Sequence record: LR756500.1
Direction: 5' to 3' (one strand)
DNA length: 41,940 nucleotides
The notes under the pieces are model-generated. The model did not search any database and was not told the origin of the DNA. It saw only the letters and a list, made by a program, of their open reading frames with translations. A program made the translations under genes and the position numbers. The stretch's first letter is position 1, and the number at the start of each line of letters is the position of its first letter. This document shows positions 2,674 through 33,032 of this stretch, one piece after another.

Positions 2674-4314
2674 TTAGCTTTTTTTCCATTCAAATTTATA
2701 ATTTCCTGTTCCAAAACATCTATAACATCCTCTATCATGCATTATTTCCACTTCAGTCATCGAGGGATCTGCTCCTTCTTTAACCAATTTATCCTTTCTG
2801 AACTTAAACCTATTTTCTCGAATTCCATCTACCACCCACCAATAATTAAGTCCTGTATGCCCTATATATTTAAACCTTAATTTAGTATATAAATTATCTT
2901 GCTCATCAACCNNNNNNNNNNNNNNNNNNNNNNNNNNNNNNNNNNNNNNNNNNNNNNNNNNNNNNNNNNNNNNNNNNNNNNNNNNNNNNNNNNNNNNNNN
3001 NNNNNNNNNNNNNNNNNNNNNNNNNNNNNNNNNNNNNNNNNNNNNNNNNNNNNNNNNNNNNNNNNNNNNNNNNNNNNNNNNNNNNNNNNNNNNNNNNNNN
3101 NNNNNNNNNNNNNNNNNNNNNNNNNNNNNNNNNNNNNNNNNNNNNNNNNNNNNNNNNNNNNNNNNNNNNNNNNNNNNNNNNNNNNNNNNNNNNNNNNNNN
3201 NNNNNNNNNNNNNNNNNNNNNNNNNNNNNNNNNNNNNNNNNNNNNNNNNNNNNNNNNNNNNNNNNNNNNNNNNNNNNNNNNNNNNNNNNNNNNNNNNNNN
3301 NNNNNNNNNNNNNNNCACCAACTTAACTCCCTTTTCTTTAGCTAATGCTGTCTTATCTAAATGATAATCTTTAGGTTTATTGAATTCATTGTGCCAATAT
3401 ACTCCATTATGCTCAAAACCTAAATTATATAAAGGTATAAATATATCTATTTCATCTCCATTTAAAATAGTTCTATCTATTTTTGTTTCTATATTTAAAC
3501 TTTCTATAAATTCTCTAATTTCATTTTCTTTACCACTAGATCTATAACTATTTAATGGATTACAATTAAGACAAGGATTAATTGAATATACATTAATTCT
3601 TTGATGAAGTAAAAAAGAATTGATATTATAATTTTTATTACATTTATTACAAATAATATCTATAGTTCTATTTTTATTTATTTTAATTATATTTAAATGA
3701 TTATATTTGTTTTTAATATATGTTTCATATTTCTCAAATAATGTTTCTTTTCTTTTATCAGTTATTATTTTGTTTTGTTGTGGATGATTAACTCCATATA
3801 TTTTATTCCAAGTTTCTTTTCTATTTTTTAAAAAATCTTCAGTTTTAAATATACTATCTTTACCATATCGTTTAATATATGTTTCTTTTATTTTATTTTG
3901 AATTTTTTCATTTGATATAAAATTTTCACCATATTTTTCTTTTAATGTTTCTTTTCTTTTATTAATAAAATATTCACTTTGAAATAAATTTTCTGTTCCA
4001 TATTTTTCTTTTATTTTTTTATATCTATTATCTTTTACTAATTGATCATTTGCTGCACATTTTTTTGAACAATATCCAGTATAATTAAATTTATTTGGAT
4101 TAAATTTAGATTCTACTGAATTACATATTTTACAATTTGGAATTTTTAAAGTATTATTTAAAAAATGCCAAAGTTTACGAGAAAAATTAATATTTAATAA
4201 TTTCGTATATAAAATAATTTCTTGATATATTTCAGAAAAATTAATTTTTATTTTATATTCTGTTCTTTCTTTTCTAGAAAGTTTTAATATTTCTTTATTC
4301 ATTTTTCCATTCAA
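2674..4314 (-). CDS. Hef-like putative homing endonuclease, copy 2
   Basis: Same architecture: LWHFLNN..CKIC..YCSKKC, KYG repeats, FEHNGVYWH, C-terminus near-identical to copies 1, 4, 5. Likely start MNKE overlapping the stop of copy 3. N-run 2912-3315. Confidence 0.8.
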   Translation of the reverse strand: MNGKMNKEILKLSRKERTEYKIKINFSEIYQEIILYTKLLNINFSRKLWHFLNNTLKIPNCKICNSVESKFNPNKFNYTGYCSKKCAANDQLVKDNRYKKIKEKYGTENLFQSEYFINKRKETLKEKYGENFISNEKIQNKIKETYIKRYGKDSIFKTEDFLKNRKETWNKIYGVNHPQQNKIITDKRKETLFEKYETYIKNKYNHLNIIKINKNRTIDIICNKCNKNYNINSFLLHQRINVYSINPCLNCNPLNSYRSSGKENEIREFIESLNIETKIDRTILNGDEIDIFIPLYNLGFEHNGVYWHNEFNKPKDYHLDKTALAKEKGVKLVXXXXXXXXXXXXXXXXXXXXXXXXXXXXXXXXXXXXXXXXXXXXXXXXXXXXXXXXXXXXXXXXXXXXXXXXXXXXXXXXXXXXXXXXXXXXXXXXXXXXXXXXXXXXXXXXXXXXXXXXXXXXXXXXXXXXXXXVDEQDNLYTKLRFKYIGHTGLNYWWVVDGIRENRFKFRKDKLVKEGADPSMTEVEIMHDRGCYRCFGTGNYKFEWKKS

Positions 4315-6001
4315 ATTTTAATGAACCACTATCATATATTCTATAAATTTTTCTAGACATCATTATTTCATGTTCTGTCATATTAGAATCATAACCTTCT
4401 TTAACTAATACATCTTTCCTATAATTAAATCTATGTTTTTTAATTCCATCTACTACATACCAATAATTTGGAGGTGTATTATTTATAAAATTGAATCCTA
4501 ATTTATAATAAAGATTTCCTTTACTCCAACTCCTATCAGCATAACTAATTATTCTTATTGGATTATATTCTTTAATAAAATGTTTAAATAAGCGATCAGC
4601 ACCACCAATAACATTAGTATTTAAAATTGTACAGAATCTAAGTAATTCATACTCATTTTCAATTGAAATTTGTCCTAGTGCTTTTCTTAATACACTAAAT
4701 GTCATTAAACTAACTAATTCATTATTATAATATAGCCCATATTTTATTTTAGATGGAGTATATCCTTGTATGTGATTTTTTTCTAAGAAATCTTTTTCTT
4801 CTTTTGTATTAATTTCTTTTATATCACATTTTCTAGCATATATTTTATTATCAGATAAATTTAATATATTTTTTATTCTAGATTTAATTATATCTTTTTT
4901 ATAATACCAATCATCTTCATATATATGTATTAATTTTATATTATTATTTTCAGCTAATTCTGTTTTTTCTAAATGATAATCTTTATCCTTTTGGAGTTCA
5001 TTATGCCAATAAATTCCATTAAATTCAAATCCTATTTTTAAATCAGGTAAATATATATCTATTTCTTTACCATTTAAAAATATTCTTCTATTTAATTCTA
5101 ATGTATTATCATATATTTCACTTATAAATAATTTTAAACTATTTTCAGGTTTTGATAAATTTAATTGATTACAATTTGTGCATGTTTCCTCTTTATTATA
5201 TCTATATCTAAATAAATCTCTACTTATTTTATATGATTTTTTACAATTGTTGCACATAATAGTGAAAAAATCTCTTTCAATAAGAAGTATTTGTTTATCT
5301 GGATATGTTTTTATTATATTTTCTTTTCTTGTTTGTAGTATTTTATATTTAATATTTTCAACTTTATTTGGATTATCTTCTCCATATAGTTCTATCATTG
5401 TATTTTTAAATACATCTTTAACTATTTCCGATTGCCATGGATGATTAGTTCCATAACGTTCTTGGGATGTTTTTTTATATGACTCTTTCCAACTATCTAT
5501 ATTTTCTTTGAATGATTCTATTCTTTTTTCTTGTATCTCCTTTAATTGGGCTACATTTTCTACACCATAACGTTCTAAATTAGTATTCTTTAACTTATTT
5601 TGAATATCTTGTTTTTCTTCTTCGGATTTATTTAATTTAGTATTACTTAATTTATCTTTTATATTCTGTAATTTATTTGGATTATCAACTCCATAACGGT
5701 TTAGACTAGTTTTACGTCTAGATTCTTTCATTTTTTCCTTTAACTCTGGATCATTAACCATACATTCTTTTGAACAGTATCCTGTATATCCAATATCTAA
5801 ATTTTTAAAATTAGAATCTTTATTATTACATACTTTACACTTGGGAACTTCTTTTATTTTATATATGTAGTGCCATATTTTTTGTAAAAAACTGATATCT
5901 AAATCTAAATAACCATTTATCAATTCATACTTAATTGGATAATTTTTCTTTACACTGCGTTCTTGTAATAAATTTCCTTTTAATTCTATAATATTTTCCA
6001 T
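4295..6001 (-). CDS. Hef-like putative homing endonuclease, copy 3 (most divergent, fully visible)
   Basis: RYG repeats, EIDIYLPDLKIGFEFNGIYWH, NHIQG, YELLRFC, ISYADRSWSKGNLYYKLGF. Confidence 0.85.
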   Translation of the reverse strand: MENIIELKGNLLQERSVKKNYPIKYELINGYLDLDISFLQKIWHYIYKIKEVPKCKVCNNKDSNFKNLDIGYTGYCSKECMVNDPELKEKMKESRRKTSLNRYGVDNPNKLQNIKDKLSNTKLNKSEEEKQDIQNKLKNTNLERYGVENVAQLKEIQEKRIESFKENIDSWKESYKKTSQERYGTNHPWQSEIVKDVFKNTMIELYGEDNPNKVENIKYKILQTRKENIIKTYPDKQILLIERDFFTIMCNNCKKSYKISRDLFRYRYNKEETCTNCNQLNLSKPENSLKLFISEIYDNTLELNRRIFLNGKEIDIYLPDLKIGFEFNGIYWHNELQKDKDYHLEKTELAENNNIKLIHIYEDDWYYKKDIIKSRIKNILNLSDNKIYARKCDIKEINTKEEKDFLEKNHIQGYTPSKIKYGLYYNNELVSLMTFSVLRKALGQISIENEYELLRFCTILNTNVIGGADRLFKHFIKEYNPIRIISYADRSWSKGNLYYKLGFNFINNTPPNYWYVVDGIKKHRFNYRKDVLVKEGYDSNMTEHEIMMSRKIYRIYDSGSLKFEWKNE

Positions 6002-6145: not shown

Positions 6146-9100
6146 TTAGATAAACTCTCCAGTTGAAATAGCACCAGTCTTAAGAACAGTTGTTCTGTGA
6201 ACAAGAATTTCCAATCCCTTTACTGGTTCAACATATGTATCTAGTATACCTATATTTTTGTCTATTACATCAGGAGTATTATTTGTTTCATCCATAATGT
6301 TTCTAAAATCGTATACACCGTTATCTGCTTGAATTTGTCTCATAAAGTTATCAGCAAGTGTTTTAATTTCTAATCTAGTTTGTGCAGTATTAAATTCAAA
6401 AATAAAGTTTTTAAGAATTGCTGCAATACCATCTTGAATATAAATTAATACTTCTCTTACATGAATACTAGAAAGAGCAGACTTGATATTTTGTTGAGCT
6501 GTTTTATTACCAAAGATTACAATACCTGTACCGCTTTGGAAAATAATTGGGTTAAGTCCGAAAGGTTCAATCCAATCTCTATCTTCTTTAGATAAATTAT
6601 ATTCTAATCCAACTAAACCTCTTCCACCTACTACACCTCTTCTAGGACCTGCAACAATTGCCCAAGGTACTGAAGATGTATATTTTTCTACGAAGTTATT
6701 TGACACATAACCAGCAGGAGGAATAGCTAAATTTTTACCTCTATCTCTTACTAATACATAAGGAATATAAAAACCTGCATAATTTGATCCTTGTTCAACA
6801 CCTGGAAGAGTATATACTACTTTAGGATTTTTAGTTAAATCTCCACCTTCAGAAATCATTTTGGTATCAAGTAAACCTTGAGCATCTAAGAATGAAGGAT
6901 CTGTAGATTCTTTAAAATCTTTTATTGCTGGTGCATTAAGAATTGCAAATGCATTTTGTCTAGTTTTAGCTAAGTTACAAAGAACTGCTTTAGAACCTGA
7001 TTCAATACCTAATCCAAATGAATCAACAATATATCTAAAAGTTATATTATCTTTATCTATAAGAGCTTTATATAATTTTGTTCCAGATATAGTATCGTAT
7101 AAGATATTATTTTGTTGTTCCATAGAACCATCTGGTAAATGATAGCTAGTATAAGTAAATCCATTTAATGAAAATAAAGTATAATAATCAACCCAATCTC
7201 CAATTTTGCTATATACTTCAACTGAAGGAACAGCATTTACAGTTTTAAATAAAACTTTACCTACTGTTGTAACTGTTAATGTAGTAGCATTTTGTGAAAT
7301 TCTAACTATTCTAGTTAATCTAGAAGGACCTGTTGTACCACCATCATCGGCTACTATATATTTACCTACTGCTAATTTATTTGCATAATCAGAATGTACT
7401 TCAATAACATTACTTAATGATGTAGCAGTTGCAGGTATAGTTGAATTTAATGCTCCTTTTAAAGTTTGAATTACTAATGTATCTGTTGCAGCAGGAGTAT
7501 CAGTATTATCAAAAAATACTTCAGAGAAATTAAATGTTCCTTGAGTTACAAAACTTGAATCTTCGTATCCTTCAATTTTAGCAACTGGAATTAAATAATT
7601 TGTATCAGTAATAGCTCCACTTAAATATAAACCTCCATATACTATAGAATCAAATGTAGTTATAGTACTATCAATATATAATACTTCTGCAGCTTGTGGA
7701 TCTCCACTACCGTCTGCATCCCATATCATTTTATCTCCATCTGTAATTGTTCCTTGTTCAACGCTAGTATACATATCATTTGAATATGCTGCTATAATTG
7801 AATCAGCAGGTGCTGCAACTAAATCATCAACTAAAAAGTCAATATCTGTATAATTAACATATTTAAGATCATTTCCTGATAGAGCAGTATCAAATGATGT
7901 TTCAGTAATTCCTCCTACTACACTTACTTCAATTAATGCAGTTGTTGCAGTTACCTGTTTAGTAATAACTGGTACAAATTCTCCACTATCTGCTTGTAAA
8001 TAAGAACCTAATATTCTAGGAGATAATTCATTTTCTCTAAATTCTTCTTGTGCAACAATATTATAAAATGTTGCATTAGTTGAACTATCAACACTTATTA
8101 AAAGATTTCCAGATGATGCTAATACTGGATTTAATCCTGTACAATCATTTATAGCTTTTAATGTTACTGATTTCTTAGCATAATCTAAATTAGCTTTAAT
8201 TGTTTCTTTATAAGAAAGAAAATCTATTGTTGTAGGTTGTTCCCATTCTAAATTATGTCCAATTAAATCTAATCCACCATCTACTCCTGAAAGTAATTCA
8301 CCACTATCATATGCTTCTTTATTAATAGAACAAAATAATCCTGTTTTAGAAGTTTCTGTATTAATAATTGTTTCAATGAATAGATTATTACTATTTAAAT
8401 CAATAAAATCTGGAATTAAACATCCTGTATAAGTTGCAATATGATTTACTTCTGGTAAATTTAAGAATGCTTCAAGAGATGTATCAGTCGAATCTGCTAC
8501 TGATACTTTTCTTTTTATACCTCTAGATTTATCAAAATAACTAGCAAATAAAGGATCTGATGCTAATCTTTCATATGGAGTTGTATCAGTTGATTTAGGA
8601 CCAAAATCTCCTTCAATAACTATTACATCAATCATAAAATCTGATATATAATCATCTTTGTGTAAAAACTCAGGTATATTAGATATACCATACCATTCTT
8701 TAACAGTAATATCAAAACCACTTATAAAATCTGCTCTTTTAACAATTACAGTTAAAGGCTTTTTATCGATATTTGTTAAATTAAATAATTTATTTCCAGA
8801 TGAAGTAACATTTTTAATAAATGCTTCTGTATCAGGAAACCAAAATTTATCTCTATTGAAAAATCCTGCAAATAAATCTGATGATTTTGTATCATTAATT
8901 TGTGTTGCACTAGTTGAAAATACAACATCTTCAATTTTATCAGCATTTCCTTCTGAATCGTCATTATTTAATCTTAATAAATTAAGAGCTAAAATTGGAC
9001 CTCTTTCTAAAGCAGCTAAACATGTTCTGTGAAAATAAGAACCTTTTCTTTCTAAAGTTCTATCTATACTTCCATATACATCGCTAAAAAAGCCAGTATC

Positions 9101-9256
9101 TGATACATAAATAGGCGTATTGAAAGGGCCTTTCTTACTAAATCCAACGATCATTCTAATTTGCTCAGCAGGTATAGAAACTGTTTGAGATTTATCAAAC
9201 TCAAATCTATAGGTGCCGGAACTACGAAGCGATGCAATTTGTGGTGATATTGCCAT
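6146..9256 (-). CDS. Tail sheath protein (T4 gp18-like), 1036 aa
   Basis: N-terminal GTYRFEFDKS..IVGFSKKGPFNTP; C-terminal AGPRRG, GNKTAQ..SALSSIHVREVL, FIFEFN..TR, DETNNTPDVID. Confidence 0.95.
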   Translation of the reverse strand: MAISPQIASLRSSGTYRFEFDKSQTVSIPAEQIRMIVGFSKKGPFNTPIYVSDTGFFSDVYGSIDRTLERKGSYFHRTCLAALERGPILALNLLRLNNDDSEGNADKIEDVVFSTSATQINDTKSSDLFAGFFNRDKFWFPDTEAFIKNVTSSGNKLFNLTNIDKKPLTVIVKRADFISGFDITVKEWYGISNIPEFLHKDDYISDFMIDVIVIEGDFGPKSTDTTPYERLASDPLFASYFDKSRGIKRKVSVADSTDTSLEAFLNLPEVNHIATYTGCLIPDFIDLNSNNLFIETIINTETSKTGLFCSINKEAYDSGELLSGVDGGLDLIGHNLEWEQPTTIDFLSYKETIKANLDYAKKSVTLKAINDCTGLNPVLASSGNLLISVDSSTNATFYNIVAQEEFRENELSPRILGSYLQADSGEFVPVITKQVTATTALIEVSVVGGITETSFDTALSGNDLKYVNYTDIDFLVDDLVAAPADSIIAAYSNDMYTSVEQGTITDGDKMIWDADGSGDPQAAEVLYIDSTITTFDSIVYGGLYLSGAITDTNYLIPVAKIEGYEDSSFVTQGTFNFSEVFFDNTDTPAATDTLVIQTLKGALNSTIPATATSLSNVIEVHSDYANKLAVGKYIVADDGGTTGPSRLTRIVRISQNATTLTVTTVGKVLFKTVNAVPSVEVYSKIGDWVDYYTLFSLNGFTYTSYHLPDGSMEQQNNILYDTISGTKLYKALIDKDNITFRYIVDSFGLGIESGSKAVLCNLAKTRQNAFAILNAPAIKDFKESTDPSFLDAQGLLDTKMISEGGDLTKNPKVVYTLPGVEQGSNYAGFYIPYVLVRDRGKNLAIPPAGYVSNNFVEKYTSSVPWAIVAGPRRGVVGGRGLVGLEYNLSKEDRDWIEPFGLNPIIFQSGTGIVIFGNKTAQQNIKSALSSIHVREVLIYIQDGIAAILKNFIFEFNTAQTRLEIKTLADNFMRQIQADNGVYDFRNIMDETNNTPDVIDKNIGILDTYVEPVKGLEILVHRTTVLKTGAISTGEFI

Positions 9257-11271: not shown

Positions 11272-12084
11272 TTAAATTTTAAAATATTTATCTTTTATTT
11301 TAAATGATAAATTATATTCATGCATAAAGTTTTCTTCACCTATATTTTTTATAGTATCTTCTTTCCATTTTTCATTTCTTTGTGGATGATCATACCAATA
11401 AACTTTTTTAACTTTAAATATTTCAGAATCTTGTACAAATTTATAAAATAAATCAAAATGAATATCTGAAGACATAATAATTATTCTAGAATTATTAATT
11501 GAAGCATATAATGGTACTATTTCTTTTATTAAAATTTTTTTATTATTATCAGACATGTTAGAAATATTATCAATTATAAAAATATCATAAAGTTTACCTT
11601 TATAATTATTACTATTTACTAATTGTATACTTGAATTATTATCGAATTCTATTACTTCTGATGTGCTTTTTATAATACCTGGTTTCAAATACATAGGTAA
11701 TTTAGAATAAAAAATTTTAAATTTATTAAATAATTCTCTACCAATTTCATGTTTAATTGAAAATAAAGCTATTTTTTTTTGTTCAAATACTGCAAAATAT
11801 AAAGATAATAATGTATTTAACATTGAAATTCCCATTTGTCTAGAACTTAATAATATTGAAAATCTATTTTCATTCCAAAATTTTAAAATATCTTTTTGAT
11901 ATTCATATAAATTAATATCCAATTTTGATATAAAATATTCAATATCTTTTCTACATTTATAATATTCATCTAATTCATCATAATCTAAAACATATTTAAA
12001 TTTACTATTTTTACTATTAGGTATATTTCTATAACAATATTCATTGCTATTTATACTATTTTTATTTATATAATTCATAACCAT
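11272..12084 (-). CDS. Terminase large-subunit ATPase-domain paralogue with degenerate motifs
   Basis: YKCRKDIEYF, LYEYQ (Q motif), SRQMGIS (Walker A without Lys), FIIDNIS (Walker B DE>DN), YSKLPMYLKPG, VYWYDHPQR; no nuclease domain. Confidence 0.8.
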   Translation of the reverse strand: MVMNYINKNSINSNEYCYRNIPNSKNSKFKYVLDYDELDEYYKCRKDIEYFISKLDINLYEYQKDILKFWNENRFSILLSSRQMGISMLNTLLSLYFAVFEQKKIALFSIKHEIGRELFNKFKIFYSKLPMYLKPGIIKSTSEVIEFDNNSSIQLVNSNNYKGKLYDIFIIDNISNMSDNNKKILIKEIVPLYASINNSRIIIMSSDIHFDLFYKFVQDSEIFKVKKVYWYDHPQRNEKWKEDTIKNIGEENFMHEYNLSFKIKDKYFKI

Positions 12085-12175: not shown

Positions 12176-14062
12176 TTAAATAATATCATAAATATCGAAA
12201 AATAAACTACCATCTTCTCCTTTAGATCCCTTATTTAATTCTTTATCAACTAAATCTTGAATATCTTTTTCTATTATTTCATATAATTCTTCTGCAAAAT
12301 CTGAGAAATCCATAGTAGAAAAGAATTCATTACTGGTTATGCAAGACATTATTAAATCATCGTGTCCCTTCATTCCAGCATAGGATCCAGCTGGAGTTTT
12401 TCCAAATTGTTTAGCTTCTTCTATTGTATTAAATTCAAATAATTGTATTCTATTTTCTCTAATTGATTTTTTAAATTTTTGACATATTATAGGTTTATTA
12501 TCAGTTTTAATTCTTAATCCAAAACTAGGAGTCTTTGCGTCATTTCTATGTTTAAATTTTACTATCATTTCTTCATCAAATTCATTTCTAGATGGAAAAA
12601 TAGTTTGTAAATTTTTAATTAATTCACCACCAAAAGTATTCCATTCTATTATTATTTTTATATTTTCTGCATAAAAAATATCAAAAATTAAAGTATATAA
12701 TATTTTAGCATATTGTTCAGGAGAATGTTCATTACTTCTAAATACTCCTATTTGTTTTAAAGCAAAAAAGTCCATAAAAGAGCCAGGCTGTTTTAGATGT
12801 TTAAACATATCTTTATCTAATAATTCTAGTTTAAAGATATTTATTACAGCATGATCTCCAAAATTACCAGCAGATAAATCACAACTAAATAACCAATAAT
12901 TTTCTTCATTACCTATTTCATCAATATCAAATTTTGGATGCCATTTCAAAAATATTTCATAAGGTATTTCTAAATCTTCTAATTCATCAAATTGATGTGA
13001 TATAAATTCTACTTTTGCATTTTCTAATTTTTTAAGTTCTCCTGGACCTAAAAGTAAATTATCTCCTGATATAAATTGATTACCATATTGTCTATTAAAT
13101 GCATCTTCACCACCTAAATTAGAAATTTCTTTTCTCATCCATTCATTATCTCTTCCTGGAACCTCCCACCAATCAACTCTAAAATCTTTAAATTCATTTT
13201 GTTTTCTAACAGCTCCATCATAAATATCATGAAACTTATTAAATCCATTTGGTGTACTAGTAATAATAATTCTAGATATTTGTGAAGACGATAATGTAGG
13301 AAATACATTTTCATAAAAACTATGTACAAAATTAGGATGTATGTGAGCAAACTCATCTAAAAATAAAAGGTGAATAGTAAAACCTATACCTGCTTTTTTA
13401 GTAGTAGATTGAGCAACAATCCTACAGCCATTATCAAATTTTAAATTAAATACATCATTTTTTAATAATCCTGGTTTCATAAAAAATGGTAAATTATCTA
13501 ATATAACTTTTGCTTTATCTACAATTTCTCTCGTCGTGGCACCTTTATTCGATAAAATTAAACAATTCTTATCAAAATTAAATAATACGTACCATGCTAT
13601 ATAAATTGACGAACATATTGTTTGACTTGAAAGTATACCATTAGTATATAATCTATGATTTGGATGATTTACTGTAACATCAAACATACCTATTTTATTG
13701 TTACTTTTTGATATACTAATAATTTTTTCTAAACCATCGACTGTTATTATTTCCGTATTTAATTCAAGTTTATCGAAAGATATTTTATTATAATTTTTAT
13801 CATAAACTTTATGTAAATCAGCGCCTTCTAAAATTTTACCTGACTCTGTTATTATTGTCCATACTTTATAAGGTTGAGTATTATGAAGATATTGTAATTC
13901 TTCATATCCAGTATCAGTTAAAACTTGTATATATGATAACTTAATAGATTTAATTATTTTTTTAGATATATTATTTTCATCTAAATCTAAATTTCTATAC
14001 TGTATTTTTTCTATTAATTCTATTAAGTATAAAATTATTTTTTTTAATATTTTTTTTATCAT
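12176..14062 (-). CDS. terL: Terminase large subunit, C-terminal part, preceded by split-intein IntC (aa 1-147)
   Basis: Intein blocks EGADLH, MFDVTV..HRLYTNGILSSQ|T, then TICSSIYIAW, Walker B LFLDEFAH, STPNG, nuclease motifs CDLSAG..GD and HDDLIM. Confidence 0.92.
   Translation of the reverse strand: MIKKILKKIILYLIELIEKIQYRNLDLDENNISKKIIKSIKLSYIQVLTDTGYEELQYLHNTQPYKVWTIITESGKILEGADLHKVYDKNYNKISFDKLELNTEIITVDGLEKIISISKSNNKIGMFDVTVNHPNHRLYTNGILSSQTICSSIYIAWYVLFNFDKNCLILSNKGATTREIVDKAKVILDNLPFFMKPGLLKNDVFNLKFDNGCRIVAQSTTKKAGIGFTIHLLFLDEFAHIHPNFVHSFYENVFPTLSSSQISRIIITSTPNGFNKFHDIYDGAVRKQNEFKDFRVDWWEVPGRDNEWMRKEISNLGGEDAFNRQYGNQFISGDNLLLGPGELKKLENAKVEFISHQFDELEDLEIPYEIFLKWHPKFDIDEIGNEENYWLFSCDLSAGNFGDHAVINIFKLELLDKDMFKHLKQPGSFMDFFALKQIGVFRSNEHSPEQYAKILYTLIFDIFYAENIKIIIEWNTFGGELIKNLQTIFPSRNEFDEEMIVKFKHRNDAKTPSFGLRIKTDNKPIICQKFKKSIRENRIQLFEFNTIEEAKQFGKTPAGSYAGMKGHDDLIMSCITSNEFFSTMDFSDFAEELYEIIEKDIQDLVDKELNKGSKGEDGSLFFDIYDII
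13622..14062 (-). mobile_element. Split intein C-fragment (147 aa, atypically long, ends Ser-Gln; +1 Thr)
   Basis: Block B-, F- and G-like motifs; junction codons TCA AGT CAA|ACA. Confidence 0.8.
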
Positions 14063-15162
14063 TATTTATTTTTATTTTCTATAAATTCTAAGCAATTATT
14101 TATTACTAAATCAGGATCTTTATAATATTCTAATTCATTTACATGATATACTTCATATCCTGATCTTAATATTGCATCATCTCTATCTTTTTCTCTTTTA
14201 TTATTTTCGGGATTATTTTTATGATAATATACACCATCAAATTCTATAATTTTATTTATATCTTTTATAAAAAAATCTGGTAAAATTATTCTATTACATA
14301 ATCTTAATCTATATTCTGAATTAGTACCATCATCTAAAATAATTTTATTTTTATTTAAAGTTGCAAAATATATCTCATTATATTTATCTTTTATAATTTC
14401 ATATAAAGAAATAAAAAGTTTCTGTGATACTTTAGAATAACTACTTACTTTAAAATTATTACTCCATCTATTTATTTTTAAATTCCATTTTTCTATACCT
14501 ATTTCTTCTCCATATTTATTTATAAAAAAATTTAAATCTCTACACTGAATTTTAGAAATAATATTTTTTGCTTCTTCTAAAGAAAAACCTCTTCGTATCC
14601 AATATTCTTTATGTATAGGCATAACTCTATTTTTCATAAAATACTTATAATTATCTTTTTTCATAATAAAATATTCTTCATCTGTTAAATTAGGATATCT
14701 CTTTTTATAAAACTCAATAGAAAATGGACTAGTCTCTTTACGTTTTTGCTCAGTAGTTTTACTTTTAGACATAATGTTTCCTTCACCTTTCATTCTATCA
14801 GAAATCCATTTTCTCCATTTATCTTCTTTCATATGTTTACCTCCATTTATAGTTGTTGCCGCTTTATCACTAGGTATACATAATAATGCATCTACACCAA
14901 AATCTTTTCTATAATCACTATTATTTTTATCGGGATGAAATCTTTTGAAATGACCACTATATATTCTTTTAACAGCCATTCCACAATATTTACATATAAC
15001 ATAATCTGTATTTTCTATACTGTTTAATTTTAATTTTTCCGATTCTTTATAAGCACCATAAATACCTTTACATTTATTTGAACAAAATTTAGCACTTATA
15101 GTAGAAGAGTTAAATTCATTTTTACAATGAATGCATTTTATTTTTCTAATTATATTTGACAT
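14062..15162 (-). CDS. Free-standing Vsr/DUF559-like endonuclease between the terL halves
   Basis: Zn motifs CIHC..FCSNKC and CKYC..HFKRFH, KYGEE repeat, LPDFF..IIEFDGVYYH; own TATAAATA promoter; TAATG overlap with TerL-C. Confidence 0.85.
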   Translation of the reverse strand: MSNIIRKIKCIHCKNEFNSSTISAKFCSNKCKGIYGAYKESEKLKLNSIENTDYVICKYCGMAVKRIYSGHFKRFHPDKNNSDYRKDFGVDALLCIPSDKAATTINGGKHMKEDKWRKWISDRMKGEGNIMSKSKTTEQKRKETSPFSIEFYKKRYPNLTDEEYFIMKKDNYKYFMKNRVMPIHKEYWIRRGFSLEEAKNIISKIQCRDLNFFINKYGEEIGIEKWNLKINRWSNNFKVSSYSKVSQKLFISLYEIIKDKYNEIYFATLNKNKIILDDGTNSEYRLRLCNRIILPDFFIKDINKIIEFDGVYYHKNNPENNKREKDRDDAILRSGYEVYHVNELEYYKDPDLVINNCLEFIENKNK

Positions 15163-15166
15163 TTTT

Positions 15167-15178
15167 TATTTATATATT
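15167..15178 (-). promoter_or_regulatory. AATATATAAATA, endonuclease/TerL-C
   Basis: Directly upstream of ATG 15162. Confidence 0.7.
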
Positions 15179-15188
15179 AGATATAGTA

Positions 15189-15764
15189 CTAGCTTCTTGA
15201 TAGATAAGAATATGTTTTATATAAATAATATTTAATTTTATCTAAAAAAGATAATGTTTTATTTGTTTTAGATATAACATAATATAATTCAAATATAGGA
15301 AGTGTATAAGTATTATCTTTATTTTTAAATTTACTTAAACTATTAATTAAAGTAATATCATTTAACTTTATAGTAATTAATATATTATGGAAAAAACATT
15401 TCCCCGTTTGTCTCGCCGCGAGGCAGATACTGAAGCGATTATCAACAAAATGTCTAAGCATTTTTTCTTGATAATCTCTTAATACAATTGTTCTAAGACC
15501 TTCATCGGTCATTACTGTACAATACTTATTAGCAAAATATACTATATCTTTAGCACATTTTCTTATTTCACTTATTTCAAAATCTGTATAATCAAATATT
15601 ATGTTACCTTTTCTTATTGTTGGATTGCCTTCATAAAAGGGAGTTGATTTGGGTTTATAACCTTCATCAATCATATTCATTAATTCATTGATTTTTTCGG
15701 TACTCCATGCTGTTCTTTCTTGCACATTATCTTCTTTATGTGCTAGCGCGTATTCTTCTTCCAT
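15189..15764 (-). CDS. terL: Terminase large subunit, N-terminal part (aa 1-122) + split-intein IntN (aa 123-191)
   Basis: KCAKDIVYFANKYC, LRDYQ, Walker A AARQTGK directly followed by Cys1 (CFFHNILI..LPIFELY). Confidence 0.92.
   Translation of the reverse strand: MEEEYALAHKEDNVQERTAWSTEKINELMNMIDEGYKPKSTPFYEGNPTIRKGNIIFDYTDFEISEIRKCAKDIVYFANKYCTVMTDEGLRTIVLRDYQEKMLRHFVDNRFSICLAARQTGKCFFHNILITIKLNDITLINSLSKFKNKDNTYTLPIFELYYVISKTNKTLSFLDKIKYYLYKTYSYLSRS
15192..15398 (-). mobile_element. Split intein N-fragment of terL (69 aa)
   Basis: Cys after GK; block A-like; no block B, which is in the other half. Confidence 0.75.
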
Positions 15765-15774
15765 ATTTTAATTA

Positions 15775-16686
15775 TTAATCGAAAAAACCGAATTCAGTGG
15801 CATTTTCTATGTGTTCATATTTAACTCGTAAATCTTTAGGTAATAATTTAACTAAATGATTTAAATCATTTAAATTATTATCAAATATTTTTACAAAATT
15901 TGTTTTTATTTTTTTAAACATTATATCTAATATTTTAATTAAATATTGTTTATCCATTTTAATTTCTTTAACAACTATATTAAAAGTTTTTAATATTTCT
16001 AATAAATATTCTAAATTAGTTTCACTATAATCTAAATATTTATTGTTAAATATATTATATAATCTTACATCATTTTCATTATTATCACCTGTTTCTATAC
16101 TATTATATTTTGATATCATTTTCAATACTAAATTAATATCATTTATAGTAACATATTTATGTAAAAAATCACTATGTATAAAATTGTTTATCTTTTTTTC
16201 TATGTTATCATATTCCTTTTTTGCATTAGCTTTTAGATCGCTACTTGTTTCTAAATGATTTTGTAAAAAGAAAGTACTTTCATAATATTGAGTAGTTACT
16301 AAAAAAAATTTATCATTTCTATTTAAAACTTCTATTTCTGGTCCAGGCACAAATTCACTATTCATAGAAGGATGTTCTTCTTGATAATAATGTTTTCTAC
16401 TTATTCCTATTTCTGGAAAATCTTTAGCCATCAATAAAAAACAAGGTTGGTTTAAAACAGGTAGTTTGATATCACCTATTTCTAAATTATGTGGAGTATT
16501 TGATCTATTAGAAATTAATAATCTAGTAACTTCTTTTATAACATTTCCACTTTTTTCTCTAAGTAACCATGCAACAAGTCCGTCTTTATCATAAATTTCT
16601 TTAAAATATTTTTTACTAATATTATGATTAATTGAATCATGAACAGATTCAATTAAAAAATCTTTATATGTTTGAATATATTTCAT
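15775..16686 (-). CDS. Hypothetical protein with CTS-like leader [14 protein letters not shown]
   Basis: 303-aa ORF, no recognisable domain; ends KYEHIENATEFGFFD. Confidence 0.75.
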   Translation of the reverse strand: MKYIQTYKDFLIESVHDSINHNISKKYFKEIYDKDGLVAWLLREKSGNVIKEVTRLLISNRSNTPHNLEIGDIKLPVLNQPCFLLMAKDFPEIGISRKHYYQEEHPSMNSEFVPGPEIEVLNRNDKFFLVTTQYYESTFFLQNHLETSSDLKANAKKEYDNIEKKINNFIHSDFLHKYVTINDINLVLKMISKYNSIETGDNNENDVRLYNIFNNKYLDYSETNLEYLLEILKTFNIVVKEIKMDKQYLIKILDIMFKKIKTNFVKIFDNNLNDLNHLVKLLPKDLRVKYEHIENATEFGFFD

Positions 16687-16695
16687 TTAGTTATT
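16654..16695. repeat. 42-bp direct repeat, copy A (identical to 17439-17480)
   Basis: Minus strand AATAACTAAATGAAATATATTCAAACATATAAAGATTTTTTA. Confidence 0.95.
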
Positions 16696-16697
16696 TT

Positions 16698-17471
16698 TTA
16701 ATTATCGAAANNNNNNNNNNNNNNNNNNNNNNNNNNNNNNNNNNNNNNNNNNNNNNNNNNNNNNNNNNNNNNNNNNNNNNNNNNNNNNNNNNNNNNNNNN
16801 NNNNNNNNNNNNNNNNNNNNNNNNNNNNNNNNNNNNNNNNNNNNNNNNNNNNNNNNNNNNNNNNNNNNNNNNNNNNNNNNNNNNNNNNNNNNNNNNNNNN
16901 NNNNNNNNNNNNNNNNNNNNNNNNNNNNNNNNNNATTCTTTAAATTGCCAATCTCCTTTGGCAACTCAGTTAATTTATTATTATCTAAATTTAAATATGT
17001 TAATTTAGTTAAATTACCAATCTCCTTTGGCAACTCAGTTAACTGATTATTATATAAATTTAAAATTTTTAAATTCATTAAATTACCAATCTCCTTTGGT
17101 AACTCAACCAACTGATTTCTATTTAAATTTAATTCTTCTAAATTCTTTAAATTTCCTATTTCCTTTGGAAATTCCTTCAACTTATTATCACGTAAATTTA
17201 ATTCTGTTAATNNNNNNNNNNNNNNNNNNNNNNNNNNNNNNNNNNNNNNNNNNNNNNNNNNNNNNNNNNNNNNNNNNNNNNNNNNNNNNNNNNNNNNNNN
17301 NNNNNNNNNNNNNNNNNNNNTATTTAACTTATTATTATTTAAAGTTAAAGCTGTTAAGTTAACTAATTTTTCAATTGAAACTTTAGCTAAATTAGCTATT
17401 AACTCTAATGTATCTAATTTAACTTCTTTAGCTTCTAATAAAAAATCTTTATATGTTTGAATATATTTCAT
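16698..17471 (-). CDS. Leucine-rich-repeat protein with CTS-like leader [14 protein letters not shown]
   Basis: 23-aa repeats [23 protein letters not shown], visible as ~69-nt DNA repeats; N-runs 16711-16934 and 17212-17320. Confidence 0.9.
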
Positions 17472-17480
17472 TTAGTTATT
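17439..17480. repeat. 42-bp direct repeat, copy B
   Basis: Spans the last two codons and stop of terS and first 11 codons of the LRR gene. Confidence 0.95.
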
Positions 17481-18239
17481 ATCATTTTCAAAATCTTCAG
17501 GATCTGGTCCAAAATCCTCTTCATCATCTACATCTAAATCTTCATCTAAATCAATCACAGGTTCAATAGTTTCAGCATTTTGATAATTTTTAGTAATTAA
17601 ATCTTCTTGAGTTATTGATTCTTCTTGATCAATTATTTCTTCTTTTTTAAGACTTTGCTGTATAGCTTTCATTAAATCTTTTTGTCCTCTTGAACTGACG
17701 CCTGATTTGTTAGTAGCTTCTTTACTATTAGATGTTGTAGATTTTCCTTTGTATACTTCATAATCTCTTCCTATTCTTTTAATATCTTCTTCAGCAGCCA
17801 TCATATACATAGTTTGACTTTTAATAATATCAAGCATTGTCTTTTGAAGTTGACCTAATACCTCAAACATTCTTGGATGCATATCTCCATCTTCTATTGC
17901 TTCTAATAATCTTGTCATAGATCGTTCAGAAGTTTCTAATAAATAAATTAATTTTGAAAGACCTGAATTTTTAGCTTCTATTTTAGCTTTAATATATTCT
18001 TCATGTTCAATTATATCTTCATCTAAATAGAATTTTAGTAATGAAATAATTGTATTACGAGCTCTATCTTCTGCCTTATCTTTTATTGTTTTAAATATTG
18101 TACCAGACATTTTAACTGAAGGAAGAGCATCATCGGCCTTTTCATTAGTATTAATTTCATCAGGAAGACCGTCTATTATTAAATCACTTATAGACATTCT
18201 TACGAATTCCTTATCATCTTCACTTATTTTATCGTTCAT
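17472..18239 (-). CDS. terS: Probable terminase small subunit (T4 gp16-like)
   Basis: HPRMFEVLGQLQKTMLD resembles the gp16-family HPRxxEVxxQL motif; acidic tail; upstream of terL. Confidence 0.7.
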   Translation of the reverse strand: MNDKISEDDKEFVRMSISDLIIDGLPDEINTNEKADDALPSVKMSGTIFKTIKDKAEDRARNTIISLLKFYLDEDIIEHEEYIKAKIEAKNSGLSKLIYLLETSERSMTRLLEAIEDGDMHPRMFEVLGQLQKTMLDIIKSQTMYMMAAEEDIKRIGRDYEVYKGKSTTSNSKEATNKSGVSSRGQKDLMKAIQQSLKKEEIIDQEESITQEDLITKNYQNAETIEPVIDLDEDLDVDDEEDFGPDPEDFENDNN

Positions 18240-18257
18240 TATTTATAATATTAAAAA

Positions 18258-19733
18258 TTATACTCTTTTTTTAGCACCCTTATTTTCTTCAACAGAAGAA
18301 ATATTTATTTTTTTACCGAATGATACATTAGTATTATTCATTATATCATCTGATATTATCCAAAGTACTTTTTTAGCATACTTTGGAGTTGGTGGCATAG
18401 GAGCCAATCCATCAGTAAAGTACATCATTGCACCTAATTTTTGACCTTTATTTAAATTAGCATTAACCCATTCAAATGGTGGTTCAAATGAAGTTCCACC
18501 TCCACCTTTAAAAGATAATAAATCTTTTGCTATATTATCTCCTTTTAATTTGTGTATTACTGGATCTTGTATATTATAATCACAATGTATTATATAAATA
18601 TCTCTAATATCATAGTTATTGCAAAGATTAAGTATCTCAGCTCCAAATACTTCTAGCATACTAGTACTAACACTTCCAGAAGTATCAACAGCAATAACAA
18701 GATTTCTCATTGAATCTTCTTTATATTTAAGACCTGGTATATAAATTCCTTTACTAATATATCTCCTGTTAGGCATTTTATATTCCATGTTTCTAACAGC
18801 GAGTTTTAAAAATTTTCGTACTTCAGCTCTCCAATTAATTTGTGGAACACTTAATCTTGCAATAATTCTATCTATAGATGAACTACCTAATCCTCTTCCT
18901 TTAGATGCATTTCTTCGCATATAATCTTCCCACCATGTTCCACTTTTTCCTTCTGATTTATTTTCTCCTTCAATTTTACCAAATGTTCCTTTTTTCCATA
19001 CAGCACCAGCATTACCTAATTCAGATCCATGACCTTGTCCGGTTCCATTACATGCAGGACAAGTCGAACTACCTTGACCCTGACCTTGACCCTGTCCTTG
19101 ACCCTGACCTTGACCCTGTCCTTGACCTTGACCCTGACCTTGACCCTGTCCTTGACCTTGACCCTGTCCTTGACCCTGACCCTGTCCTTGACCTCCTGGA
19201 ATAGTTCCTGATCCATTACATCTAGGACATCCTTGTTTTGGAAATTTAGATTTTATTTCATCATAAATATCTTCTGCACTTTCACCATGATATTTTATAT
19301 CATACATTACATCATTAGGCATTTTTATTCCTGATGATTGTTCCATTTCTTTAAGAATACTATTAATAGCATAATCTGCTGCTACATTCCAAGGTTTATG
19401 TTCTCTATTTTTTATTCTTTCATGATGCATTAATGTACAATGTAATACTTCGTGCATAATAACAAATTTAAGTTCGTCCATCGTAAGTTTTAATGTAAAA
19501 TCTGGATCATATACAACAACAATTCCATCTGTTCCCATTGTACCTTGTGCTTCACCATTAATATCTTGTTTCCATTCTAATGCCGCAATAGCTTCTGCAA
19601 AAAATGGAAATTTACCTGAAACTTGACTAATAGCAGTTCTTATTTTTTTATCAGCATCAGGATTATATTTTAATGGATAATTTATAATAAGATTTTCAAA
19701 TATAAAATTTTCATAACTTTTAATATATTTCAT
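18258..19733 (-). CDS. DUF2201-type metallopeptidase + vWA protein with CTS-like leader
   Basis: MGTDG, HEVLH (HExxH), NVAADYAIN, MIDAS motif VDTSGSV, GGGTSF, YFTDG; leader MKYIKSYENFIFEN. Confidence 0.9.
   Translation of the reverse strand: MKYIKSYENFIFENLIINYPLKYNPDADKKIRTAISQVSGKFPFFAEAIAALEWKQDINGEAQGTMGTDGIVVVYDPDFTLKLTMDELKFVIMHEVLHCTLMHHERIKNREHKPWNVAADYAINSILKEMEQSSGIKMPNDVMYDIKYHGESAEDIYDEIKSKFPKQGCPRCNGSGTIPGGQGQGQGQGQGQGQGQGQGQGQGQGQGQGQGQGQGQGQGQGSSTCPACNGTGQGHGSELGNAGAVWKKGTFGKIEGENKSEGKSGTWWEDYMRRNASKGRGLGSSSIDRIIARLSVPQINWRAEVRKFLKLAVRNMEYKMPNRRYISKGIYIPGLKYKEDSMRNLVIAVDTSGSVSTSMLEVFGAEILNLCNNYDIRDIYIIHCDYNIQDPVIHKLKGDNIAKDLLSFKGGGGTSFEPPFEWVNANLNKGQKLGAMMYFTDGLAPMPPTPKYAKKVLWIISDDIMNNTNVSFGKKINISSVEENKGAKKRV
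19071..19196 (-). repeat. (Gly-Gln)20 hexanucleotide microsatellite between two CxxCxGxG motifs
   Basis: 20 in-frame GGN-CAR units; much higher GC than surroundings. Confidence 0.95.
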
Positions 19734-21448: not shown

Positions 21449-21457
21449 TTATATATT
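21449..21457 (-). promoter_or_regulatory. AATATATAA, AAA+/vWA/terS operon
   Basis: Overlaps gp14-like stop, upstream of ATG 21434. Confidence 0.55.
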
Positions 21458-31334: not shown

Positions 31335-32123
31335 TTACCAACGACTAAAAAATTTTCTTCTTCTTGTATTTTTACCTGTTAAATCTCTACCTCCTGGACC
31401 TATTACAGCATTTTGTTTTCTTGTATCTTCAGCTTTTTTTGCAACTTGATATGTAGCTACATGTTTTTCTTTACTAAATCCTTGTTGTATATTTTCAAGT
31501 CTTTTCTTTTCTAATTCTCTATATTTTTTTTCTTCTTCAGCTTCAAATCCTTTTTCTATATCCTCAAGTCTTTTTTTTTCAAGTTCTTTAATTGCTTTTT
31601 CGTCTTCTTTCATTTTAATATTAACTTCTTTTGTATCAGATGCAATAATTCCCATCTTTTCAGTATTTTGTCTCATAAGTTCTTTTCTTTCTTCTCCTTC
31701 TGCAATTTTAACTCTTTCGTTATTTACTCTTAATTGACCTTTTAATCTAGAAATTCTTTGAACTTTTCTTAAATATTCATTACTGCCTGCAATTTCTAAA
31801 GCTTCTGCTTCATATTCTTTAGCATTATCTTCTAATGCATCTAATTTAGTTTGAAGTAATGCCCACATTCTTTCAATATTAGGTTTTTTTCCTTCACTGA
31901 AAGCTCTTTCAATTTGTCTTCTTTGATCAATTTCTTGTCTTGCTGCTTTTAATCTTAATAAATTAGCTTTTTCTTGAAGATTTTTAACTTTAGGAGCATA
32001 AATAAACCAGTCACTTATTCTACCTTCATTTAATTGATTATTAAATAAATCAATTAAAGTATTTATTAACTCTTCATTAAAAGATTCTTCTATATGATTT
32101 TCATATGTTTCTAAAAACTTCAT
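31335..32123 (-). CDS. Coiled-coil protein with CTS-like leader MKFLETYENHIEES
   Basis: E/K/R-rich heptads, LNEG motif, late-promoter-like motif at 32139-32147. Confidence 0.7.
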   Translation of the reverse strand: MKFLETYENHIEESFNEELINTLIDLFNNQLNEGRISDWFIYAPKVKNLQEKANLLRLKAARQEIDQRRQIERAFSEGKKPNIERMWALLQTKLDALEDNAKEYEAEALEIAGSNEYLRKVQRISRLKGQLRVNNERVKIAEGEERKELMRQNTEKMGIIASDTKEVNIKMKEDEKAIKELEKKRLEDIEKGFEAEEEKKYRELEKKRLENIQQGFSKEKHVATYQVAKKAEDTRKQNAVIGPGGRDLTGKNTRRRKFFSRW

Positions 32124-32138
32124 GTAAATGTATTTTTA

Positions 32139-33032
32139 TTATATATTGGGATTTTTCATATAATTGTGTGTAGCAGTCTTACCAATATCATACCATTTAG
32201 CAATAGTTTCTTTACTAAATTCATACATACCTTTACCATCAGATAAAACATATGGCATAAATATTTTATGATTTTTAATTCCTCTTTCTTTAGATAATAA
32301 ATCCATTTTTTCTTCATCATTTTTAGATATTTCTATCATCATAATATCGAATCCTCTAAATATAGGTTTAAGAACATTAGTAGCTTTCCAATTATCTTCT
32401 ACTATCATTGCATTTTCAGGTCGTGAAAAGATAGAATAATTTTCAGTTATATTAAATTTTTCAACTAACCAATGTGATCCAATATGATCTCTTACTCCAC
32501 CATCATAATAATATTCATCATTCATTAAAACTGGTTCAACAAAAGCTGGAATGCTCGATGTAGATTTAACATTATCTAAAAATTCTTCATATGTAAGTTG
32601 TTTACAATTAGCGTATTTTCTAGATCCGGTTTTAAAACCAACTGAACATAAAAATACAGTAGGATATATTTTATTCTTTTTATAATCATTAAAACGCTTT
32701 TCAGTCATAACTTTCTTAAAAGTATTTATTAATTGATCTTGTTTTCCTAATGAAGGTTTTCCAGTTAATAATCTAACTAATGCTCTTAAAGTTATTTTTC
32801 CTTTAGAATTAACAGGTTTGTATTTTCCAAATATATCAGTTAATGTAAAATTAGTTATTAATTCTTTAACTTCATCATATAAACCCATAGCTAATGGAAC
32901 TGATAATATTCCACCAGCAGATGTACCAACTATATAATTAGGTTCATAATTATAATCACATAATAATGTAATAGCTGCACCACCTAAAGCTGCAATCTTT
33001 GTACTTCCACCTGATATTGATAAACTTTTCAT
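32139..33032 (-). CDS. Patatin-like phospholipase
   Basis: SGGSTK (oxyanion loop variant), GTSAG (GxSxG), SSIP..F, DGG. Confidence 0.9.
   Translation of the reverse strand: MKSLSISGGSTKIAALGGAAITLLCDYNYEPNYIVGTSAGGILSVPLAMGLYDEVKELITNFTLTDIFGKYKPVNSKGKITLRALVRLLTGKPSLGKQDQLINTFKKVMTEKRFNDYKKNKIYPTVFLCSVGFKTGSRKYANCKQLTYEEFLDNVKSTSSIPAFVEPVLMNDEYYYDGGVRDHIGSHWLVEKFNITENYSIFSRPENAMIVEDNWKATNVLKPIFRGFDIMMIEISKNDEEKMDLLSKERGIKNHKIFMPYVLSDGKGMYEFSKETIAKWYDIGKTATHNYMKNPNI

Follow-up and report, generated by a model that had tools for sequence, protein, structure and literature searches.

A leucine-rich repeat protein of an uncultured huge phage may be head cargo addressed by a T4-like N-terminal leader

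Within a 41,940-nucleotide stretch of record LR756500.1 (positions 182061–224000, hereafter the window) there is a gene for a leucine-rich repeat (LRR) protein, located on the minus strand at window positions 16698–17471, whose product begins with a 13-residue leader that is present on 31 open reading frames (ORFs) of the same genome. The leader resembles the capsid targeting sequence (CTS) of the internal proteins of bacteriophage T4, and we propose, with a probability of roughly 0.5, that the LRR protein is head cargo, which would be loaded by its leader, trimmed after Glu13, and released into the cell along with the DNA. An earlier note, made from the letters of the window, had described the protein as "probably virion-packaged", and this suggestion now has real but indirect support, both from the T4-CTS-like leader on the 31 ORFs and from an S77 protease encoded in the same genome. 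The record is a 462,018-bp unannotated assembly of an "uncultured phage", the window has a GC content of 24.6%, and the public sequencing runs that contain the locus are groundwater metagenomes, with no RNA runs among them.

The leader has the consensus MKYIKEYEEFLNE (pattern MK[YF]I..Y..F[LIV].E), and several of its features stand out. First, the carriers, which include six of the seven LRR paralogs in the genome, mostly have no similarity to one another beyond the leader, or beyond the leader and a C-terminal tail, and their genes are clustered at 12–17, 180–201, 255–271 and 313–323 kb, with singletons elsewhere. Second, 18 copies of the core Y..F[LIV].E lie at residue 7, and a single one lies elsewhere in 134,766 residues (0.004 expected). 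Third, the codons differ from copy to copy (AAA/AAG, TAT/TAC, ATA/ATT, GAA/GAG) while the residues are constant, and the constraint therefore acts on the peptide and not on the DNA or RNA. An exception to this codon variation is provided by the gene next to the LRR gene, encoding 303 residues, the first 51 nt of which, with 9 nt ahead of the ATG counted in, match the beginning of the LRR gene at 94% identity, which suggests that a local duplication or gene conversion took place recently. Finally, the residue that follows position 13 is mostly Ser, Ala or Asn across the set. In the window LRR protein the leader occupies 17433–17471 (minus strand), contains both Tyr7 and Phe10, and ends Leu11-Leu12-Glu13 followed by Ala. 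The first 50 residues of this protein, searched alone, gave no match at the scale of database E-values, and neither the leader string nor the accession LR756500.1 was found in the literature searched.

The internal proteins of T4 carry the CTS MKTYQEFIAE (PMC8442874), in which mutational work has shown that targeting needs Tyr4 and Phe7 and processing needs Ile8 and Glu10, and the T4 prohead protease gp21 cleaves after Leu/Ile-x-Glu (PMC9026906). The leader aligns with this sequence such that, when T4 Tyr4 is set on leader Tyr7, all four key T4 residues meet the four best-conserved leader positions: Tyr4 falls on Tyr7 (conserved in 30 of the 31 leaders), Phe7 on Phe10 (27 of 31), Ile8 on Leu/Ile/Val11 (27 of 31), and Glu10 on Glu13 (21 of 31). 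In both systems proteins that have little else in common begin with a short leader, aromatic residues at i and i+3 in this leader are followed by Ile/Leu-x-Glu, the genes concerned are clustered in variable regions, and an S77 prohead protease, a Gp23 capsid protein and a Gp20 portal are encoded in one genome. There are also differences. The leader described here is three residues longer than the CTS (MK-YIK-..), it has about 31 carriers as opposed to three or so in T4, about 14 of these add a second conserved sequence as a C-terminal tail, and the cargo would include LRR solenoids and enzymes that are not uniformly basic; packaging and cleavage of the LR756500.1 set are predicted.

The genome encodes the head components that such a route would need to resemble that of T4. 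A T4-type head module is located 1–6 kb to the right of the window, with matches to Gp23 capsid (8e-34), Peptidase_S77 (6e-11) and Portal_T4 (2e-70). The protease match (PF03420, 44.8 bits) lies above the cut-off of 27 bits, and the protein is 632 residues long, with Peptidase_S77 in its N-terminal part and a coiled-coil, scaffold-like remainder. The capsid protein is closest to those of the huge phages LR756501–04 and the Lak phages of Prevotella (34–38%), followed by Tenacibaculum jumbo phages (32%). The LR756500.1 phage is one of the Lak/"huge phage" lineage. With relatives such as these a host in the Bacteroidota is a reasonable guess, but only a guess. The window itself contains genes for the tail tube and tail sheath, homing endonucleases, pieces of terminase, a MoxR-like ATPase and a DUF2201 metallopeptidase/VWA protein, and the earlier reading of the LRR gene as a phage gene is borne out by the tube, sheath and terminase genes together with the adjoining head module.

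The leader is not confined to this genome. Pattern scans revealed it on ORF starts at 10 more loci in IMG/VR and 32 in metagenomes, with GC contents of 22–42%, on marine, freshwater and groundwater contigs; pattern scans also returned loci of a second assembly of the same genome (IMGVR_UViG_3300025030_000039, which is Ga0209518_1000007), and one of these, which judged by its spacing seems to fall at the 3' end of the LRR gene, was given no weight. At these 42 further loci the sequences downstream of the leader are unrelated, and an LRR is present in none of them. An S77 protease is present on each contig of sufficient length for this to be assessed. On a 200-kb contig with the protease there are five clustered genes of the MKKVKLFEEFI.E type, one more gene starting MKYIKLYEDFVNE, and one starting MKIIKTFEEFTNS that lies directly upstream of the protease, and Gp23 and S77 occur together on a 50-kb contig. 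The huge phage LR756502.1 has four leader matches, one of them on an HNH-like protein, compared with zero for a reversed-pattern control. Many of the loci are syntenic with the 237–272 kb region of LR756500.1, as determined by local tblastn against fetched pieces, and in orthologs of two leader proteins with an overall identity of only 32–39% the N-terminal [FY]..F[LI].E is kept. A 421-residue leader protein encoded at genome positions 267941–269206 (minus strand) contains a conserved ..EGG..GH..HPF.. segment and has homologs at 32–35% identity in several environmental phage contigs, the leader being retained in each; if there is a core cargo protein, this is the strongest candidate.

A short AT-rich element links a number of the leader genes with genes for virion proteins. 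The sequence ATATATA[AT] is rare in the genome (2.8e-4 per base), yet 59 of 487 ORFs have it in the 45 nt before their starts (1.1% expected). Among them are the genes for the tube, sheath, capsid and protease as well as 10 of the 31 leader genes, and of the other leader genes most come directly after another leader gene. The copies lie 15–35 nt before starts, including those of the tube gene (2027–2578), the sheath gene (6146–9256) and a 1501-residue ORF (35086–39591), at about ten times the expected frequency. From this placement ATATATA[AT] may be the late promoter of the LR756500.1 phage; the T4 late promoter, for comparison, is TATAAATA. A promoter-like ATATATAA at 21449–21456 (minus strand) heads a co-directional block comprising genes for the MoxR-like ATPase, the DUF2201 protein, a protein resembling the small subunit of terminase (TerS), the LRR protein, the 303-residue protein and the N-terminal fragment of the large subunit of terminase (TerL), and no terminator-like site was found on the minus strand between 15000 and 21700. 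This arrangement fits, but is not proof of, expression of the LRR gene together with virion genes. A scan for sigma-70 promoters and terminators gave 47 sites with 48.7 expected, which is the chance level.

The body of the window protein is made of LRRs of the 23-residue "typical/bacterial" class (Pfam LRR_8, LRR_4, LRR_14), as the earlier note had recognized. Pfam LRR_14 matches at 3e-23 and LRR_8 at 5e-16, both above their cut-offs, Tandem Repeats Finder reports a 69-nt period with 4.0 copies and 80% matches, and LxxLxLxxNxL recurs every 23 residues. The 92 residues readable between two runs of N correspond to four units (16935–17210, minus strand), and a fifth is readable before the mask, in a segment that encodes the helical N-cap and the first unit (17322–17432, minus strand). 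The repeats had been called near-perfect, which holds for the core ELPKEIGNL, near-identical in units 2–4 (unit 1 has EFPKEIGNL), and does not hold for whole units, which are only 61–78% identical as protein and 72–86% as DNA. In a genome of 25% GC, strong codon bias also adds to the DNA identity of similar peptides. Nor do the sequences support the recent expansion or homogenization that had been proposed, since units within a gene are on average 72.9% identical, barely more than the 69.7% between paralogs, and for three of the four readable units the best match lies in a different gene of the genome; homogenization within the gene was rejected on these grounds. Two consecutive units of the window gene match two consecutive units of the paralog at 14298 at 86–90%, and these relationships suggest either exchange of blocks or shared descent among the LRR paralogs.

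Seven LRR ORFs are present in the genome, at 13446, 14298, 180972, 198758 (the window copy), 313382, 331856 and 411169, and the number of units among them ranges from about 3 to 8, in agreement with the earlier view that repeat number can vary. Six of the seven have a common layout, in which a 13-residue leader is followed by a helical cap, the LRR units, and a C-terminal domain of about 55–65 residues ending ..NADDFGFFDN or a close variant. The proteins are short, 176–278 residues, and have no trimerization or fibre-like domain. A structure model and fold test were made on paralog 14298 and not on the masked window gene. The AlphaFold model has a pLDDT (predicted local distance difference test) of 87–97 over residues 20–190, with strands and helices alternating and the cap helices at about 90, whereas the leader is a detached low-confidence helix (residues 5–14) and the C-terminal domain is of low confidence (50–69). 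The model and its top matches in the PDB, which are LRR solenoids, predict a curved LRR solenoid fold, the closest solved relatives being Leptospira LIC11098, LIC10831 and LIC12234 and SHOC2.

Proteins of this class are indeed uncommon in tailed phages, being present in 3 of 50,697 GenBank phage records: LR756500.1 itself and two Leptospira LE1-type phages (KF114877 and KF114878). A search with the whole ORF returned 2,066 matches at 40–72% identity, all limited to the 92-residue repeat block and spanning many bacteria, a giant virus and eukaryote-like proteins. The nearest donor that the earlier note had hoped to find by BLAST is not singled out by these matches, and the attempt to name one was dropped, thousands of LRR proteins scoring alike.

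Two stretches of N interrupt the gene. Window positions 12176–16690, to the left of the N-runs, map to LR756500.1 at 194236–198750, the LRR block between them (16935–17210) to 198995–199270, and the sequence to their right (17480–19000) to 199540–201060, with an identical offset of 182060 for all three, so that the N-runs of 224 and 109 nt keep the exact length of the hidden sequence. The window contains ten N-runs of odd lengths from 21 to 493 nt, and N is absent from the remaining 420 kb of the record. The N-runs are masks over a contiguous public assembly, and are not assembly gaps. Both had been thought to fall within the repeats. This is correct for the right-hand run (109 nt, 17212–17320); the left-hand one (224 nt, 16711–16934, 75 codons) is longer than one repeat and, judged by its length and by analogy with the paralogs, probably covers the last LRR unit and the family C-terminal domain. 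Of the frameshifts that the earlier note had named as a refutation there is no sign in the readable letters: a single frame of 774 nt runs from the ATG at 17471 through the LRR block to the FDN-stop at 16698, the three readable pieces being in-frame at the spacing of the public record. The last readable codons (16698–16710, minus strand) are ..FDN and TAA, as at the end of the family tail ..ADDFGFFDN. The ORF of 257 codons plus stop, continuous with LR756500.1 in frame and length, falls within the 252–278 residues of its closest paralogs, and 78 residues follow the last readable unit, as long as the tail of paralog 14298, which consists of one last LRR and a non-repeat C-terminal domain of about 55 residues. 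The length, the tail and the family-type C-terminal residues all fit an intact gene. The unit starts flanking the 109-nt mask are 49 and not 46 residues apart, and one masked unit must therefore be irregular; one paralog is likewise irregular, with a unit spacing of 47 residues.

The tail constitutes a second conserved element. About 14 ORFs end ..KYEHL.NADDFGFFDN or close variants of it (..DDFGLI, ..DDFGFL, ..EFGFFD), and nearly all are leader genes, including the window LRR gene (by its visible FDN) and the 303-residue neighbour. The carriers have weak similarity over their last 60–90 residues even where their middles are unrelated. There is no Leu/Ile-x-Glu site ahead of the tail, and it would thus stay on the mature protein. 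In IMG/VR the tail motif matched only the LR756500.1 genome, five other pattern matches lying by chance in the interior of large proteins. The motif, which is short and new, has an acidic and aromatic character and in this resembles the short docking tails of other systems.

Together the T4-CTS-like leader, the genes for the S77 protease, capsid and portal, and the promoter-like element that leader and virion genes share lend support, by inference, to packaging of the LRR protein. In the mechanism that we propose, the leader would act like the T4 CTS, carrying the LRR protein into the scaffolding core of the prohead, and the S77 prohead protease would cut it off after Glu13, at Leu/Ile-x-Glu. 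After this the mature protein would remain in the head until its delivery to the cell together with the DNA, and there the concave face of the LRR would bind a host protein in the first moments of infection. Head loading, cleavage, ejection and a host target are all elements that we infer. The putative role of "anti-defence sponge" that the earlier note had put forward as an example would be compatible with head cargo, as an analogy with T4 IPI (internal protein I), which blocks a restriction enzyme (PMC3012670).

Several observations weigh against this proposal. The likeness to the T4 CTS covers only about seven residues, to which no E-value can be assigned, and Glu is absent from position 13 in 10 of the 31 leaders. 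One LRR paralog, outside the window at genome positions 411169–411819 (plus strand), has the cap, the repeats and a ..ADDFGLI tail and starts directly at the cap, with neither a leader nor a leader remnant. The leader is absent, with two mismatches allowed, from the cultured relatives, the Tenacibaculum phages PTm1 and pT24 and Lak-B5, so it cannot be tied to any virion proteome. The charge of the proteins is also unlike that of the basic T4 internal proteins. The leader set is mixed (median isoelectric point (pI) 7.9, compared with 6.6 for all ORFs), and the LRR proteins are near neutral, with a net charge of 0 for the readable part of the window protein and pI values of 5.6–9.3 among its paralogs; mature T4 internal proteins are small and highly basic, which the LRR protein is not. 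Some leader proteins are enzymes of 330–490 residues (ATP-grasp, DUF2201/VWA), which would be an unusual head cargo, though T4 packs Alt. Lastly, the 333 masked nucleotides could hide a stop codon.

Some of these points would be accommodated if the leader were an address or regulatory tag of another kind, such as an oligomerization helix, a signal for some other intracellular assembly, or a protease-controlled activation peptide, with the LRR protein acting in the cell unpackaged. The presence of the leader on enzymes (ATP-grasp, DUF2201/VWA) and on acidic proteins, unlike classic DNA-associated internal proteins, would sit easily with such a tag, as would its absence from one LRR paralog and from the cultured relatives. 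Harder to reconcile with it are the specific match to the functionally mapped residues of the T4 CTS and the L/I-x-E ending, the S77 protease on every contig that could be judged, and the promoter-like element common to leader and virion genes, and T4 itself packs the large enzyme Alt using cleaved propeptides (PMC9026906). We consider a tag of this kind rather unlikely.

Another location within the virion is improbable, though it has its attractions. The LRR proteins could be exposed parts, either decorations or adhesins, anchored by the ..ADDFGFFDN domain and binding a host surface molecule through the LRR. About 14 proteins combine a conserved C-terminal module with middles that vary, which is how interchangeable receptor-binding or decoration proteins are organized, the LRRs of known structure that come closest belong to surface or secreted proteins of Leptospira, and the LRR gene lies among virion and packaging genes. 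Yet an N-terminal tag of the T4 internal-protein type suggests a location inside the head, the LRR proteins are short and devoid of the trimerization or fibre-like domains noted above, the supposed anchor is modelled with a pLDDT of only 50–69, and its motif was found in no other phage. It is very improbable, finally, that the window gene is a decaying paralog, broken under its masks. These cover 333 of its 774 nt, the 49-residue spacing around the 109-nt mask departs from the regular 46, and six other copies in the genome could make this one dispensable; against this stand the single frame of the three readable pieces at exactly the public-record spacing, a length within the range of the paralogs, a 78-residue tail like that of paralog 14298 with the family FDN-stop at its end, and the irregular 47-residue spacing of another paralog.

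Head cargo with propeptides has precedents in other large phages. In phiKZ, 201phi2-1 and SPN3US many head proteins are loaded via propeptides and cut after Glu by gp21-related proteases of the gp175 type (PMC9026906), and these phages share with LR756500.1 a large size and, if the proposal holds, the loading of many different proteins through propeptides. The phiKZ-type sites are S/A-x-E with no common leader, whereas here a single well-conserved leader ends L/I-x-E, and the head genes are of the T4/Lak type and not the phiKZ type. The LRRs have their own relatives. Leptospira LIC11098, LIC10831, LIC12759 and LIC12234 and SHOC2 belong to the same 23-residue class with the ..LP.EIG.L.NL.. signature (phmmer against 4u08, 4e-111; Foldseek probability 1.0, with 41–54% identity over 165–201 columns), but they are longer, cellular or secreted, and have neither a T4-like leader nor the ..ADDFGFFDN tail. 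The LRR protein of the Leptospira LE1 phages is of the same class and is 53–61% identical over the block; those phages are temperate and plasmid-like, and their host is itself rich in such LRRs. YopM and the LRR domains of IpaH/SspH are short solenoids injected into target cells as protein-binding modules. Their delivery is by a secretion system and the route proposed here is the phage head, and the likeness rests on the LRR fold.

Leader-directed head cargo is known from T4, and propeptide-directed cargo from the phiKZ-like phages. What appears to be new is the scale, with about 5% of ORFs involved, the LRR solenoid as cargo, the second conserved tail, and the spread of the leader across uncultured aquatic phages; we know of no earlier description of LRR solenoids as head cargo. 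A broader interpretation, possible but distinctly more tentative, is that in the LR756500.1 phage, and in a broader set of aquatic phages whose heads are of the T4 type, about 5% of the genes form a leader-addressed, fast-changing capsid arsenal delivered with the DNA. The seven LRR genes would then be diversified binders of host proteins that exchange repeat blocks, and the tail on about 14 genes would be a separate address that docks the mature proteins to a common partner, either a host hub protein or the ejection machinery. Huge phages have hundreds of genes of unknown role, and in T4 the first-injected head proteins are counter-defence factors. Should the proposal be correct, the 13-residue leader would provide a simple sequence rule for finding the head-packed, first-injected proteins of uncultured phages, one that extends to many metagenomic phages through the 42 further ORF starts, and the LRR cargo would represent natural modular binders aimed at host proteins.

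Several other genes of the window carry the leader or adjoin the LRR gene, all on the minus strand. The gene upstream (17472–18239) has a weak match to the small subunit of terminase, and its stop codon abuts the LRR ATG. The 303-residue gene (15775–16686) has the same leader and the same kind of tail (..KYEHIENATEFGFFD); a search with its product returned only the self-match, and it is an orphan with a middle part without relatives. The DUF2201 metallopeptidase and VWA-like protein (18258–19733) has the leader MKYIKSYENFIFE. Between its metallopeptidase-like and VWA-like parts, at about 19020–19210, there is a run of Gly-Gln dipeptides (GQGQGQ.., about 27 repeats), the DNA of which is open in several frames on both strands. 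A 262-residue ORF (31335–32123) has the leader MKFLETYENHIEE and is preceded by a promoter-like ATATATAA at 32139–32146, and directly upstream of it is a gene for a patatin-like phospholipase (32139–33032; Pfam, 6e-21).

TerL is split within its Walker A motif (12176–15764, minus strand). The N-terminal fragment of 191 residues aligns with T4 gp17 as far as ..RQTGK and continues with Cys and 67 further residues, and it is followed by a free-standing endonuclease ORF of the DUF559/MTES_1575 type at 14062–15162. The C-terminal fragment, of 628 residues, begins with a 146-residue lead ending ..NGILSSQ, and its alignment with gp17 starts from Thr147, at the residue that immediately follows the Walker A GK. 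Split inteins whose homing endonuclease is encoded by a gene of its own are organized in this manner, and the Pfam intein models gave no match to the split TerL. Just downstream of the C-terminal fragment, which already looks complete, is a third terminase-like ORF of 270 residues (11272–12084, minus strand; phrog_5989 terminase large subunit, 3e-29), which may be a second copy of the nuclease domain or a remnant. Two large homing-endonuclease-like ORFs lie between the tube and sheath genes (2674–6001, minus strand), one of them matching phrog_3339 at 6e-133, and long masks are present near these ORFs at 1136–1628 and 2912–3315.

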